From contig NW_021834363.1 of assembly GCF_006345805.1 (NCBI RefSeq), positions 1 through 50,971 on the forward strand: a DNA stretch of 50,971 bases, in the 5' to 3' direction. Position numbers and translations under genes: made by a program. A model generated the notes under the pieces. It worked only from the letters and a program-made list of their open reading frames with translations. It did no database searches and was not told the origin of the DNA. This DNA comes from Octopus sinensis. Lineage: Eukaryota. Shown here piece by piece: positions 591-40,615 of this stretch (position 1 is its first letter; the number at the start of each line of letters is the position of its first letter).

Positions 591-720
591 ATAATAATGA
601 TGATGATGATGATGATGATGATAATAATAATAAAATAATTATAATAATAATAATAATAATAATAATAATAATAATAATAATAATAATAATAATAATAATA
701 ATAATAATAATAATAATAAT
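591..720 (+). repeat. (AAT)n/(GAT)n microsatellite, start of retroelement train 1
   Basis: Direct reading; begins about 65 bp after the stop codon at 524-526. Confidence 0.95.
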
Positions 721-2484
721 AAGCACTGGACAAGCACCTGCACGAAAACAAACTGTTCCCAGAAGAGCAGAAAGGATGCCGCAAAGGCTCATATGGCTGT
801 AAAGATCAACTAATGATTAATAAAGCCTAACTGAAGACAGCCACAGAAAGAAGAAAGGCCAAATGACAAACAGCTGGAAACACTATTAAAGACAGTTCAT
901 GGATTTACCAAAAAAATAGATATGAAATTTGGATTAGAAAAATGCGCCAAAGTAACCTGAAAAGCGGAAAACTAGTTAAGAGTAACAACATCACACTAGA
1001 TAAAACCAATGAAATAAAAGAATTAGACCAAAGCCAAACTTACAAATACTTAGGAATCCATGAACTAGATAAGACACAACACACACAAATGAAAGAGAAA
1101 ATAAAAAAAGAATATTATAGACGAGTTAGATCAATACTAAACACAGAGCTCAATGCTAAAAACAAGATAATAGGTATCAACACTTTAGCTGTCCCAGTTA
1201 TAAGTTACAGCTACAATATCCTTAACTGGACACGAAATGAACTGACCAAAATAGATAGGAAAACAAGAAAAATAATGACAGGATCTAGGATGCATCACCC
1301 AAAATCTGACATAGAAAGACTATATATACAACGTATAGAAGGTGGTAGAGGCCTTATACAGCTGGAAAACTACTATAAAATAACCACCATAGGACTGCAA
1401 AAATATCTACTTCAGAAGGAAGGAAAACTGATCCAGATAGCGGCAAAACACGAGCAAAACAAAAAACTGTTCTCAGTATTTAAGGAAGCTGACAAATACA
1501 AACAAGAAATCATACCACCTAATAAACAAGAAGAAGAAGAAGAAGATGAAGAAACAACAAAAGCTATAAAACAAATGAAATCCAAACTAAAAATAGAACA
1601 GCAACGAACCATGATAAAACGATGGCAAGAAAAGCCCCTTCATGGTAAATACTGGACTAAACTAAGCGCAAAAGAAATAGACAAAGAAAAATCCCAGCAA
1701 TGGTTGAGAAGCTCAGACTCAAAGCAGAAACAGAGGGATTTTTAATTGCAGCACAAGACCAAAGCCTCCCCACCAGAAATTACCAAAAACATGTAATGAA
1801 AAGAAATATTACAAGTAACTGCAGAATATGTGGAGATGGACAAGAAACAATAAATCATATTATCTCTGGCTGCCCAGTCCTGGCTAAGAAGGAATATATT
1901 CACAGACATGACAGAGTTGGAACCTACATACATTGGAAGCTATGCCAACATTATGGAATAACAACAGAAAAAAGATGGTATAGGCACACACCAGAAAAGG
2001 TCACAGAAAACGTGAAAGCAACCATACTCTGGGATATGCCGATACACACGGATAGAGAAATTAAGGCCAACAGACCAGATATAGTTGTCAGAGATCATGA
2101 AGAAAAACAATGCTTTCTAATTGATGTATCAATACGGCAGATGACAACGTGTCTCTAAAAGAAATGGAGAAACTCTCAAAATACAAAGACCTGGAAATAG
2201 AGGTAACTAGAATGTGGAATCTGAAAACAGAAACAATTCCTATCATAGTAGGTGCATTAGGCATGATAAGAAAATATTCAGACAAATACATAACAAAAAC
2301 ACCAGGACTTACAAACACATATAACATACAGAAATTGCACTACTAGGCACTGCACACCTCCTACGCAGAACACTTTCCATACAATAACCATCAGAGCATC
2401 ACAACAAATCACAGCACATACCCAAGGCACACAGAGCTGCGCTCGGTAGTGAAGTGAAAGCACGCTATAAAAATAAGACTACTG
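721..2484 (+). mobile_element. R4/Dong-clade RLE non-LTR retrotransposon, subfamily B; 5'-truncated, internally deleted, frameshifted
   Basis: EEQKGCRKGSYGCKDQL (RT N-terminal part) is fused near 857 to NDKQLETLL...FGLEKCAK, so the YxDD region is missing. Also KYLG, CRICGDGQETINHIISGC (CCHC knuckle), RPDIVV...LIDVSI and KLSKYKDL (PD-(D/E)xK nuclease). The 3' UTR ends ...ctactg followed by AAT repeats. Confidence 0.9.
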
Positions 2485-2534
2485 AATAATGATAATAATA
2501 ATAATAATAATAAGGATAATAATAATAATAATAA

Positions 2535-3656
2535 TACTCAGTAACAAAACAGGCAAAGGAATATCTAAGTGAATTCCGAATACAACAAATTTCGGAATTA
2601 GAGATAGTCATACGAGAAAAAAGCACAGAAAAATCTAAGCGCATGAAAACCCGTGCCAAAACTGCGGCCTTAGATATTCTGAATAATAAATGGTAAGAAA
2701 AACCTCTTTATGGCAAATACCCAAAGAGAGCGAATAATGCAGATATTGACAAAGCGCTGACCCAACAATCGTTAATGGCCTATGGCTTAAAATCTGAAAA
2801 AGAAGGGTTTATCATAGCAGCTCAATATCAATGCCTACCAACAAGAAACTACCAGGCCAACATATTAAAGAACGGCAGTAGCCCAACATGTCGTGTATGT
2901 CGACAACAAAATGAAACCATTGACCATGTTGTCTCCAAGTGCAGTCTTCTAGCGCCTACAGAGTACCTCAACAGGCATGATAGAGCTGCACAATATATTC
3001 ACTGGGTAATTTGCAAAAACCTGGATTTGCCCCAATGAAAAAAACTGGTGGGAACACAATCCACCTCCAGTGTGCTTGAAAATGACCACATCTCACTCCT
3101 CTGGAACTTCACCATTCAAACTGACAGAAAAATAGATGCAAATAGGCCAGACATCATATTAAAAGACTTCAAATAAAGAACATGCCTCCTCATTGATATG
3201 ACTGTCCCAATCGATATAAACGTATCTGTCAAGACCTACCAAAAACTGAGCAAATATAAAGATCTTGAAATAGAAATCAGCAAAATGTGGAACCTGAAGA
3301 CTAAAACAATACCTGTTGTCATAGGTGCCCTGGGAATGATAGCGAAAGGGGCTGATTGCTACCTAACTCAGATACCAGGAAACCCCAAAATGGCAGAAAT
3401 TCAAAAGATAGTGCTCATGGGAACTGCTCATATCCTACGCAAAATACTCTCTATGTAATCTCAAGGTTTAAAACAAACATTTTTTTTCTTTTTTTAATTT
3501 ATTTATTAGACATTCACTAGTACAACACACAAAAAAACCAAATATATGGCACACTAGGCATAACAATAACATGAACTTCCAACCTGTTGTCTCTTGAGGT
3601 CTCTGGGTGAGACTTGGAGCCAACTTGTACAAACATAAAGCAAAAGTCAAACATAG
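2535..3656 (+). mobile_element. R4/Dong-clade element, subfamily D; 5'-truncated, with stops
   Basis: EKPLYGKY, GLKSEKEGFIIAAQ, CRVCRQQNETIDHVVSKC, RPDIILKD...LIDMTVP, KLSKYKDL, GTAHILRKILSM*. About 200 nt 3' UTR; flanked by AAT on both sides. Confidence 0.9.
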
Positions 3657-4011
3657 AATAATAATAATAATAATAATAATAATAATAATAATAATAATAA
3701 TAATAATAATAATAATGATAATAATAATAATAATAATAATAATAATAATATAATAATAACATAACAATAACAACAACAACAACAACAACAACAACAACAA
3801 CAACAACAACAACAATAATAATAATAATAATAATAATAATAATAATAATGATGATGATGATGATGATGATGATGATGATGATGATGATGATGATGATAAT
3901 AATAATAATAACAACAACAACAACAACAACAACAACAACACAATAACAATAACAATAACAATAATAATAATAATAATAATAATATAATAATAATAATAAT
4001 AATAATAATAA
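3657..4011 (+). repeat. Compound (AAT)/(AAC)/(GAT) microsatellite
   Basis: Direct reading; blocks of single-base variants of AAT. Confidence 0.95.
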
Positions 4012-4561
4012 TGATGCAGTACCAGGCAGTGGCTCTCATGGCTTCTGATCTTAACTGATTGGAAGTGTTATCATGTACATTGTTTTGTCTTGGTATAAAA
4101 GATGGGCTACAGCAAATATTCTGCTCAATACCACAGATTTGCTTGACAGTTGTTTGACCGTAACCAGTTGAGCATGTCCCTTAGTGGCTGACGATATGTG
4201 CATCTCTGATCATGAGCAGAAGTAGTGGGGGAGCATCATAGCCATGTGTTGAGAGGGATTCTTTGGGGTTTGAATAGTTCACCTCTGGAAACATGGGTAG
4301 TTCTTTCAACATCCTTAAACAACCCTTATTCAGGGACCGTTTGAGCGGGATGGGCTACTCAACCTGAAGAAAATTCTAATTGGGCCCCACCTGCAAGGTC
4401 ATGTGCTGTTTATCTTGATATGAGATCACCATGTCGCGCACATATGGTTGTGATGCATGTGCCTGGTGTACCTTTATCAGACGGGTAGTCATGATGGGTA
4501 TATTGGGCTTCGTATATTTTACCCCAGTGTCACTTTGATGGCATGCACTGCTCTCTCACTC
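4012..4561 (+). mobile_element. Non-coding ~550-bp repeat X, copy 1, embedded in (AAT)n; probable non-autonomous retroposon or isolated LINE 3' UTR
   Basis: Near-identical to 4906-5459; ends ...gctctctcactc|aataat; no TE ORF seen. Confidence 0.6.
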
Positions 4562-39056: not shown

Positions 39057-39159
39057 ATAAACAATAATAATAATAAATAATAATAATAATAATAATAATA
39101 TAATAATAATAATAATAATAATAATAATAATAATAATAATAATAATAATTATAATAATA

Positions 39160-39894
39160 CGCAAAAGAAATAGACAAAGAAAAATCCCAGCAATGGTTGA
39201 GAAGCTCAGAAACAGAGGGATTTTTAATTGCAGCACAAGACCAAAGCCTCCCCACCAGAAATTACCAAAAACATGTAATGAAAAGAAATATTACAAGTAA
39301 CTGCAGAATATGTGGAGATGGACAAGAAACCTACATACATTGGAAGCTAGGCCAACATTATGGAATAACAACAGAAAAAAGATGGTATAGGCACACACCA
39401 GAAAAGGTCACAGAAAACGAGAAAGCAACCATACTCTGGGATATGCCGATACACACAGATAGAGAAATTAAGGCCAACAGACCAGATATAGTTGTCAGAG
39501 ATCATGAAGAAAAAAATGCTTTCTAATTGATGTATCAATACCGGCAGATGACAACGTGTCTCTAAAAGAAATGGAGAAACTTTCAAAATACAAAGACCTG
39601 GAAATAGAGATAACTAGAATGTGGAACCTGAAAACAGAAACAATTCATATCATAGTAGGTGCATTAGGCATGATGAAAAAAATATTCAGACAAATACATA
39701 ACAAAAACACCAGGACTTACAAACACATATAACATACAGAAAATTGCACTACTAGGCACTGCACACATCCTACGCAGAACACTTTCCATACAATAACCAT
39801 CAGAGCAGCACAACAAATCACAGCACATACCCAAGGCACACAGAGCTGCGCTCGGTAGTGAAGTGAAAGCACGCTATAAAAAATAAAACTACTG
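39160..39894 (+). mobile_element. 5'-truncated R4/Dong subfamily B copy
   Basis: Near-identical to 1666-2484 except for two microhomology deletions; AAT-flanked. Confidence 0.9.
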
Positions 39895-40045
39895 AATAAT
39901 AAAATAATAATAATAATATAATAATAATAATAATAATAATAATAATAATAATAATAATAAAATAATATAATAATAATAATAATAAAATAATAATAATAAT
40001 AATAATAATAATAATATAATAATAATAATAATAATAATAATAATA

Positions 40046-40197
40046 ATTGCACTACTAGGCACTTGCACACATCCTACGCAGAACACTTTCCATACAATAA
40101 CCATCAGAGCATCACAACAAATCACAGCACATACCCAAGGCACACAGAGCTGCGCTCGGTAGTGAAGTGAAAGCACGCTATAAAAATAAAACTACTG
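40046..40197 (+). mobile_element. ~150-bp 3' stub of R4/Dong subfamily B
   Basis: Repeats the last codons and 3' UTR of 39743-39894; AAT-flanked. Confidence 0.9.
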
Positions 40198-40454
40198 AAT
40201 AATAATAATAATAATATAATATAATAATAATAATATAATAATAATAATAATAATATAATAATAATAATAATATAATAATAATAATAATAATAATATAATA
40301 ATAATATAATAATAATAATAATAATAATGATAATAATAATAATAATAATAATAATAATAATAGTAATGATAATAATAATAATAATGATAATGATAATAAT
40401 AATAATAATATAATAATAATAATAATATAATAGTAATAATGATAATAATAATAA
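40198..40454 (+). repeat. (AAT)n microsatellite, end of train 2
   Basis: Direct reading; followed by the conserved flank at 40455-40490. Confidence 0.95.
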
Positions 40455-40615
40455 TGGTTCTGGGCATTCTCACAGTCACAAACACACTCATGTATCTCCT
40501 ATACATAAATACATACATACATACATACATATATATATATATATATATATACATACATATATATATATATATATAATTCATACATACATATATATATATA
40601 TATATATATATATAT

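Follow-up and report, generated by a model that had tools for sequence, protein, structure and literature searches.

Dong elements are long interspersed nuclear elements (LINEs) that target (TAA)n microsatellites in insects, molluscs and cnidarians (PMC7998251; PMC3812793). A divergent Myb/SANT-like N-terminal domain without zinc fingers is reported for R4/Dong (PMC7998251), and a 5′ hepatitis delta virus (HDV)-like ribozyme has been published for both Dong and R4 (PMC3774820). In Octopus vulgaris, Dong-R4 is the largest recently active LINE group, with 5 families and 1129 insertions (PMC13282606), and the O. bimaculoides library includes a Dong with an intact open reading frame (ORF; PMC9115989). 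These octopus papers provide genome-wide counts and describe many recent near-full-length insertions; target microsatellites go unmentioned, and 'AAT' does not occur in their text (PMC13282606; PMC9115989). Here we describe two trains of such LINEs in the window, which is the entire unplaced contig VCDQ01000048.1 (50,971 bp) of Octopus sinensis assembly GCA_006345805.1. Each train fills an AAT tract that follows one of two paralogous host genes. We consider it very probable that the trains grew by serial AAT-targeted insertion of Dong/R4-type LINEs into a tract particular to one gene subclade, separately at the two gene copies.

The window elements resemble Dong of Bombyx mori, DongAg of Anopheles gambiae and DongBg of Biomphalaria glabrata in their single predicted ORF with reverse transcriptase (RT), CCHC knuckle and restriction-like endonuclease (RLE), and in having no detected apurinic/apyrimidinic endonuclease (APE). 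They share with Dong a fixed orientation of insertion into (TAA)n, 3′ ends made of (TAA)n and a mollusc host on record (PMC7998251; PMC3812793). Unlike Dong as described, several subfamilies and a putative non-coding passenger are stacked here at one tract, and the unfilled state is kept in sister genes. Head-to-tail, co-oriented, multi-family LINE arrays with simple repeat between their members are also formed by SART1/TRAS1 of Bombyx and HeT-A/TART/TAHRE of Drosophila. SART/TRAS and HeT-A/TART, however, use an APE-type endonuclease, end-attachment or Gag-based targeting at chromosome ends, in or beside telomeric repeats, and the Drosophila arrays serve telomere maintenance, whereas the octopus arrays are interstitial (running from a gene to a unique flank), RLE-type and based on an AAT repeat, with no indicated host function; the likeness is an analogy only. 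Element type, target and host group are already on record, and no new kind of element or mechanism is revealed. What is new is a clean series of filled and empty sites, with multi-family trains beside paralogous genes.

The same sequence flanks both trains. The gapless left flanks (521–594 and 36160–36233) and the 32/36 identical right flanks (10831–10866 and 40455–40490) of the original prediction are confirmed; the left flanks agree at 61/74 positions. A 29-mer from the right flank, allowed up to 3 mismatches, has only two sites in the window, where 100 shuffles give an expectation of 0. For comparison we used chromosomal loci fetched through protein matches of the host gene, about 218 kb in all: L001 and L003–L009, with L003, L004, L007 and L009 in O. 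sinensis, L005 and L006 at CM016859.1 213361006–213382715 and 205005694–205027403, and L008 in O. bimaculoides. The right flank occurs 5 times in these 218 kb, each time directly after the tract of this gene subfamily. It is gene-adjacent, and not the end of an unrelated high-copy repeat. The landing pads are laid out as follows.

527–585, plus strand: left flank of landing pad 1, from stop codon to tract, with AATAAG/ATTAAA inside.
586–722, plus strand: left tract remnant of landing pad 1, (GAT)8(AAT)n, found by Tandem Repeats Finder (TRF); the (GAT)8 start is also present in the L005 and L006 empty sites.
10812–10830, plus strand: right tract remnant of landing pad 1, 'aataataataatattaatatt', the same as the 3′ end of the empty-site tract.
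10831–11485, plus strand: right flank of landing pad 1, which starts with the 36-mer first recognized and matches the sequence after the tract in L005 and L006 at 98.9% over 659 bp.
36132–36229, plus strand: left flank of landing pad 2, homologous to L001 12224–12325.
36230–36421, plus strand: left tract of landing pad 2, (AAT)n, found by TRF.
40455–40490, plus strand: right flank of landing pad 2, 32/36 identical to copy 1; its core is 27/32 identical to L001, where it stands directly after (TAG)6(TAA)4.

The tracts had been placed in the 3′ untranslated region (UTR), a location that finds no support. An AATAAA in L005 and L006, and an ATTAAA in the window, lie directly 3′ of the stop codon and upstream of the tract. 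Because these motifs precede it, the tract may be situated just past the host poly(A) site.

Sister genes retain the unfilled state. P0012 (569 aa), a protein of the copy-1 type, is encoded twice on CM016859.1, at L005 and L006, and the two loci are 99.84% identical over 4.5 kb. In both, the gene end is followed by (GAT)8, about 190 bp of (AAT)n with the tract end 'aataatattaatatt', and then directly by the right flank, at the identity given above; the train is absent. L001 encodes P0001, of the copy-2 type (gene end 88.6% identical), and there the left flank leads into (TAG)6(TAA)4 and on into the right flank 'ttgttctgggcattctcacagttacaaacacactca...' with no element remnant. Paralogs with short or empty tracts, for which the original prediction had suggested looking, are thus present with both flanks kept. 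After the stop codon of five more distant paralogs (L003, L004, L007, L008 and L009) we found no AAT tract. Taken together, the empty sister sites and the tract-free distant paralogs demonstrate that the AAT tract is a feature of one gene subclade, that the right flank is genuine locus sequence, and that both trains arose after the gene copies separated. L005 and L006 lie 8 Mb apart, one of them near the chromosome end; either the segment was duplicated very recently or one haplotig has been placed at two positions. Elsewhere in the window, a 138-bp (ATA/AAT)n tract at 44940–45077 has no recognizable A, B, D or X sequence beside it; the segment that follows (45206–45597) is 86% identical to the post-tract sequence of L001.

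Self-BLAST and TRF analysis of the window form the basis of our map of the trains. Train 1 occupies 586–10830, about 10.1 kb, with elements in the order B, D, X, X and Y/A′, followed by about 20 bp of AAT before the right flank.

723–2536, plus strand: B, a 5′-truncated subfamily-B RLE LINE, with the C-terminal part of the RT, CCHC and RLE at 723–2484 and an AAT tail at 2485–2536.
2537–4012, plus strand: D, a 5′-truncated RLE LINE of a third subfamily, with thumb, CCHC, RLE and 3′ UTR at 2537–3656 and an AAT/GAT tail at 3657–4012.
4013–4904, plus strand: X copy 1, non-coding, 549 bp and AAT-tailed, its 5′ end short by 7 nt, with the tail at 4562–4904.
4905–5732, plus strand: X copy 2, with its body at 4905–5459, a full 5′ end ('atgccct...') and the tail at 5460–5732.
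5733–10811, plus strand: A′, a full-length 5.08-kb RLE LINE of a divergent A subfamily, in which Y (5733–6434) is the probable 5′ UTR.

The B element contains ORFs at 942–1745 and 1700–2158, with a zf-RVT domain, and is 94–97% identical to other B copies. Translation of D yields CRVC...H...C, RHD, RPDIIL, LIDM and KYK, and a longer D-family copy in L001 (1426–3533) has an open frame of about 630 aa. The two X copies are 98.5% identical, with 5′ junctions 7 nt apart. X is also present in L001 and L004, at 98% identity, and the 5′ ends of some of these copies differ; the one at L001 922–1356 begins at X coordinate 115. X contains no ORF, and ARAGORN identified no tRNA-derived head in X or elsewhere. 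Non-coding, AAT-tailed copies, some with differing 5′ ends, fit a putative role of X as a non-autonomous passenger.

The A′ element continues after Y with (CTG/CTA)n and an AT-rich stretch (6435–7078), a degenerate ORF from about 7130, a Myb-like N-terminus, RT, CCHC, RLE and a 3′ UTR. Over 3.7 kb it is 74.8% identical to a second full-length A-type element that lies inverted between the two genes, and Y is 86% identical to the 5′ part of that copy. The arrangement AAT, Y, low-complexity sequence and A-type ORF occurs both in train 1 (5733–10811) and in the inverted copy (20472–14979), and because of this we read Y as the probable 5′ UTR of full-length A′. We rejected Y as an independent passenger, given that the same layout is found in two subfamilies only 75% identical in the ORF. 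Copy 1 holds the predicted members in the predicted order, except that Y is probably not an element of its own. The 5′ UTR apparently also harbours a hypervariable microsatellite: each full-length element has a trinucleotide array at the corresponding position after Y and before the ORF, (CTG/CTA)n at 6486–6921 in one and (ATC/ACC)n at 18964–19054 in the other.

Train 2 extends over 4.2 kb (36230–40455) in the order A, B and B-stub; the inverted copy is listed with it.

36422–39159, plus strand: A, 5′-truncated at full-length coordinate 2848, with its body reaching 39053 and an AAT tail at 39063–39159.
39160–40047, plus strand: B, 5′-truncated at B coordinate 945, with an internal deletion of about 72 bp, its body reaching 39894 and the tail at 39895–40047.
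40045–40455, plus strand: B-stub, the last 152 bp of B (40045–40197) plus an AAT tract.
14940–20525, minus strand: inverted full-length A element, with a 5.49-kb body at 14979–20472, tail at 14940–14978 and 5′ tract at 20473–20525.

The A element of train 2 belongs to a young A subfamily, has an RVT_1 domain and is 95.3–95.8% identical to the inverted copy. The B-stub with its tract forms a tandem unit (TRF: period 304 bp, 2 copies, 95% identical), and L005 and L006 also contain a B stub truncated at the same position, B coordinate 1611. Rather than arising by a very short insertion, the B-stub may have come from tandem duplication of the end of B together with its tail. The three predicted contents of copy 2 are present, while the status of the B-stub as an insertion of its own is what this possible duplication calls into question. 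The inverted copy had been described as obeying the strand rule within (ATT)n and as ending at 18950; it does lie between an (ATT)n tail at 14940–14978 and (TTA)n at 20473–20525, but its body reaches 20472. Its Y-like 5′ part is tandemly duplicated (19387–19843 and 19840–20315, 87.6%). A train upstream in L005 was considered as the counterpart of this site and rejected, the flanks being unrelated. The tail of the inverted element is separated by 180 bp from a (TTATA)n satellite of about 141 units (14052–14753). Just past the right flank of train 2, within a TA/TACA microsatellite, is a near-perfect palindrome (40611–40785) with 87-nt arms that are 97% complementary and a 1-nt spacer.

The two trains differ in contents, order and truncation points, as had been noted. 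Their B elements are 94–96% identical, compared with 81% for the gene ends (80.8% by self-BLAST, 3–722 versus 35627–36365), and start at B coordinate 1 in train 1 versus 945 in train 2. The A element of train 2 is about 95% identical to the inverted full-length copy, and A′ of train 1 only about 75%. Our data indicate that the trains were built separately at each copy, after the gene duplication, from five to six elements at copy 1 and two to three at copy 2.

A consistent target rule emerges from the junctions, which we counted in the window and seven loci. About 20/22 of the 5′ junctions lie in sense-strand AAT, and nearly all 3′ ends are AAT-tailed. Within the window, every train member is on the plus strand with AAT on its sense strand, in line with the head-to-tail, co-oriented arrangement first described. 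Trains also occupy AAT tracts away from a gene 3′ end, at L003 5777–6911, L004 17597–20343 and L007 14998–19494. Trains are thus a property of AAT tracts and not of the gene family, and the attachment of the arrays to the 3′ end of the family, which the original prediction had stressed, is incidental. For copy 1 the empty sites contain about 190 bp of AAT and the filled site about 1180 bp, a rise of about 6-fold; for copy 2 the figures are about 30 and about 700 bp, or about 20-fold. Both rises fit the idea that insertion regenerates and enlarges its target. A long B copy in L007 is immediately preceded by about 2.5 kb of (AAT)n (14998–17566). No tract in the window comes near this length, which suggests that tract growth ran away here or that the reverse transcriptase extended a tail.

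Judged by sequence profile and predicted fold, the elements are LINEs with an RT, a CCHC knuckle and a PD-(D/E)XK restriction-like endonuclease. Pfam identifies RVT_1 in A at E=1e-27 and in A′ at 2.5e-12. The 405-aa ORF of A (37669–38886) has 346 homologues across Metazoa, and none of these carries a clade name. In an alignment of 37 homologues the CX2CX8HX4C knuckle and the RH, PD, D and K residues are invariant or nearly so (C218/C221/H230/C235, R246-H247, P303-D304, D319 and K338). A profile of the homologues reaches R2 proteins in the PDB at E=6e-22, with the match extending from palm and thumb via the knuckle into 'KPDLIF...DVTV...KYKxLE'. An AlphaFold model of the same ORF (AF2, pLDDT 82.5) has R2 structures as its top seven Foldseek matches (TMq 0.63–0.71), followed by PD-(D/E)XK nucleases. 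It is because the profile and fold searches both arrive at R2 structures that we assign a restriction-like endonuclease to these LINEs, as had been anticipated; alignment, profile and fold agree on the knuckle and the nuclease core. A single-sequence search of the PDB with the 405-aa ORF (phmmer) returned no R2 match, and no match at all, so the relationship to R2 is distant.

The elements share with R2 (9nl3, 9dou, 9nl2 and 8gh6) the thumb, linker, CCHC knuckle and PD-(D/E)XK fold, and by analogy target-primed reverse transcription at a repeated, sequence-defined target, together with a presumed dependence on co-transcription. They differ from R2 in that the target is (AAT)n and not 28S ribosomal DNA (rDNA), that no N-terminal zinc fingers are seen in the translations, and that R2 insertion does not renew its target site. 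No rRNA was detected in the window. The conceptual N-terminus of the inverted copy reads '...KWTREEYKEVIYAYYYALGRPS...LANVRRDIFRNNRLTDSEI', and A′ is similar; its Myb-like stretch, 'KWTREEYKEVIYAYYYA...', has no significant Pfam Myb match, the one match obtained being weak and irrelevant. Pfam identified no Exo_endo_phos (APE) domain in the N-terminal ORFs of A′. In the RT region B is 66% identical to A at the nucleotide level. With A/A′, B and D there are at least three subfamilies, accompanied by the non-coding, AAT-tailed X; the predicted number of subfamilies stands, and of the predicted passengers X is retained and Y is not.

A convincing 5′ HDV-like ribozyme, such as that shown for Dong (PMC3774820), was not found in the elements here. 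Rfam detected none at the gathering score in the whole window, nor at E≤10 in the two 5′ regions, where only low-complexity chance matches appeared. A candidate of HDV topology can be built by hand at the AAT/Y junction (P1 TTAGAGC/GCTCTGA, P3 GTG/CGC, L3 TTCCTCCT, P2 GCTGG/CCAGT). It is without P1.1, is missing from the inverted copy and is equalled in 47/2000 shuffles (2.35%), and we claim no ribozyme.

We propose that the ancestor of the subclade carried a short mixed microsatellite (TAG/GAT/TAA) about 60–100 bp past the stop codon, which in some gene copies would have grown into an (AAT)n tract at least about 50 units long. An element with the predicted plan of one ORF, comprising Myb-like N-terminus, RT, CCHC knuckle and C-terminal restriction-like endonuclease, would recognize (TAA)n, nick one defined strand and perform target-primed reverse transcription from its own (AAU)n RNA tail. 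A strand-defined nick and priming by the AAU tail would account for the fixed orientation, the AAT on both sides and the frequent 5′ truncation. Each new copy would add its own AAT tail and split the old tract, providing more target per insertion, and later arrivals, including other subfamilies and X, could land beside earlier ones to generate co-oriented head-to-tail trains. We infer the nicking and priming steps from the biochemistry of R2 and Dong; the insertion order and the mobilization of X by LINE machinery are likewise presumed.

Several observations weigh against serial insertion by Dong/R4-type elements. Target preference was sampled in the roughly 218 kb of related loci, and all element copies in the window have broken reading frames. 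The Dong/R4 label rests on architecture, target and published octopus repeat annotations. HERO, which also includes microsatellite-specific families (PMC4640811), may be an alternative placement; the O. vulgaris annotation lists Dong-R4 as abundant and very few Hero elements (PMC13282606), and the supplement of the O. vulgaris repeat paper comes without consensus sequences. The end of the contig (44774–50971) matches L006 15510–21710 in inverted orientation at 99.6% identity, about 3.5 kb downstream of an empty copy-1-type site, and the filled and empty sites may be either alleles or recent paralogs. To these points are added the formal equivalence of an empty site and a clean train deletion, and the recurrence of the same neighbours in other trains (X-AAT-B, D-AAT-X, and B with its stub), which hints at DNA-level duplication, recombination or template jumping. 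Contig and chromosome thus differ in structure over the last 6.2 kb, for which inversion, haplotype divergence, a paralogous unit and a misjoin are all candidate explanations.

The recurrent neighbours raise the possibility, which we regard as real if on balance unlikely, that the trains were made or spread largely by unequal crossing-over, tandem duplication or gene conversion involving AAT tracts or homologous elements of separate trains, or by template jumping, in which the reverse transcriptase would pass from one AAU-tailed RNA to another and produce head-to-tail concatemers within one integration. The 304-bp tandem unit of B end and AAT, and the stub truncated at B coordinate 1611 in both the window and L005/L006, are what such processes would leave; D-AAT-X is found in train 1 and in the L001 train, and X-AAT-B adjacency in L001, L004 and L005/L006. 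Five or six elements in one tract within 1–4% flank divergence are also many for independent insertions, and work from the Eickbush laboratory reportedly established that the R2 reverse transcriptase template-jumps. The shared neighbours, however, mostly differ in truncation: the window D starts about 1 kb further 3′ than the L001 D, B copies start at 1, 945, 1050 or 168, and X copies differ in their 5′ ends. The two window trains, moreover, have no block in the same order. Duplication or template jumping would still require a founding integration targeted to AAT, and so modifies rather than replaces serial insertion; DNA-level events probably contributed to the trains.

An ancestral origin of the trains, with the empty L005/L006 and L001 tracts produced by secondary deletion through recombination or slippage between flanking AAT tracts, would also explain the empty sites, and we give it little credence. 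Loss of everything between the two outermost AAT tracts would produce a pure tract, as observed, and AAT tracts are long and unstable here, up to about 2.5 kb in L007. Against this, a clean loss would be needed independently in both gene lineages, L001 retains only four TAA units behind (TAG)6 and no trace of an element, and the two trains have no orthologous element in common. A and B are 94–96% identical to copies elsewhere, compared with 81% for the genes, which makes the train members younger than the gene duplication.

That the trains are assembly artefacts, chimeric long-read joins through AAT in a poorly polished contig, we consider extremely improbable. The contig is unplaced and only 51 kb long, its 3′ 6.2 kb run opposite to the chromosome at 99.6% identity, and every junction falls in low-complexity AAT. 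Both trains nevertheless exit the left flank of the gene and re-enter the matching right flank of the same locus, which is improbable for chimeras to achieve twice, and comparable trains are present in the chromosome-placed L001, L004, L005, L006 and L007.

If the trains grew by serial insertion, they might in addition act as source loci, each forming a gene-driven, self-enlarging launch pad that lives off transcription of the host gene, an interstitial counterpart of R2 in rDNA. We regard this extension as doubtful. AAT lies on the sense strand of the gene and all elements are co-oriented with it, so that read-through past the poly(A) site could co-transcribe the train; a 5′ self-cleaving ribozyme, as in Dong and R4, would then free element RNAs that each end in the next AAU tract. 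A launch pad, if true, could account for the many elements piled into one tract within 1–4% divergence.

Collectively, the loci provide a natural series in one genome, in which the same microsatellite is short, expanded but empty, or filled with three or six elements, for the study of target choice and target enlargement. They also show by example that LINEs with microsatellite tails can convert a short repeat beside a gene into kilobases of repeat and element sequence. Despite the recent activity of the family, short-read analysis with MELT detected hardly any new Dong insertions in octopus; short reads may miss insertions that fall into AAT tracts or into trains already in place, and we suggest this as a reason for the low number.

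The host genes encode octopod-specific, apparently intronless multi-pass membrane proteins of 730–750 aa, with two members in the window and about 20 relatives in O. sinensis, O. vulgaris, O. bimaculoides and Argonauta.

1–526, plus strand: C-terminal coding end of gene copy 1, of the P0012 type, with its 5′ part cut off by the contig start and an ORF at 68–526.
33909–36131, plus strand: gene copy 2, an intact single-exon ORF of 740 aa.

The C-terminus of copy 1 reads ...AYAGDVNPVI and differs from P0012 in 3/152 residues; at the nucleotide level copy 1 is 95.8% identical to L005/L006. The protein of copy 2 matches one O. vulgaris protein at 98% identity and P0001 of O. sinensis at 83%. Pfam detected no domain in the host gene, even at E≤10, and the UniRef name 'Receptor for retinol uptake STRA6' attached to some members of P0001–P0015 is unsupported on the same ground. 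The family forms tandem clusters on one O. sinensis chromosome. Genes of the copy-2 type end in '...INLFEE' (window 36100–36233), and their O. bimaculoides relatives continue '...FEEVNTSQTSLSIY' (L008 8200–8260); this reading-on past the shared end implies that part of the left flank is former coding sequence, lost to an earlier stop codon.

Other repeats in the window lie outside the trains. Between 21746–28776 and 29469–32432 there is a patchy segmental duplication at 72–97% identity, with (GTAT)n arrays at 25149–25400 and 30282–30433; segments of it are found again 5′ of the genes in L001, L005 and L006, which marks it as a repeated cluster unit. A 1.7-kb AT-rich unit bounded by (TA)n is tandemly duplicated at 40859–44294 (97.6%), each unit having internal inverted similarity. 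The motif 'gctaagtaacggggacgtaaaca', present in 2.1 repeats at 13543–13604, also occurs at L003 12400–12460, where an insertion that immediately follows the P0003 stop codon contains it, and is probably part of an abundant octopus short interspersed nuclear element.

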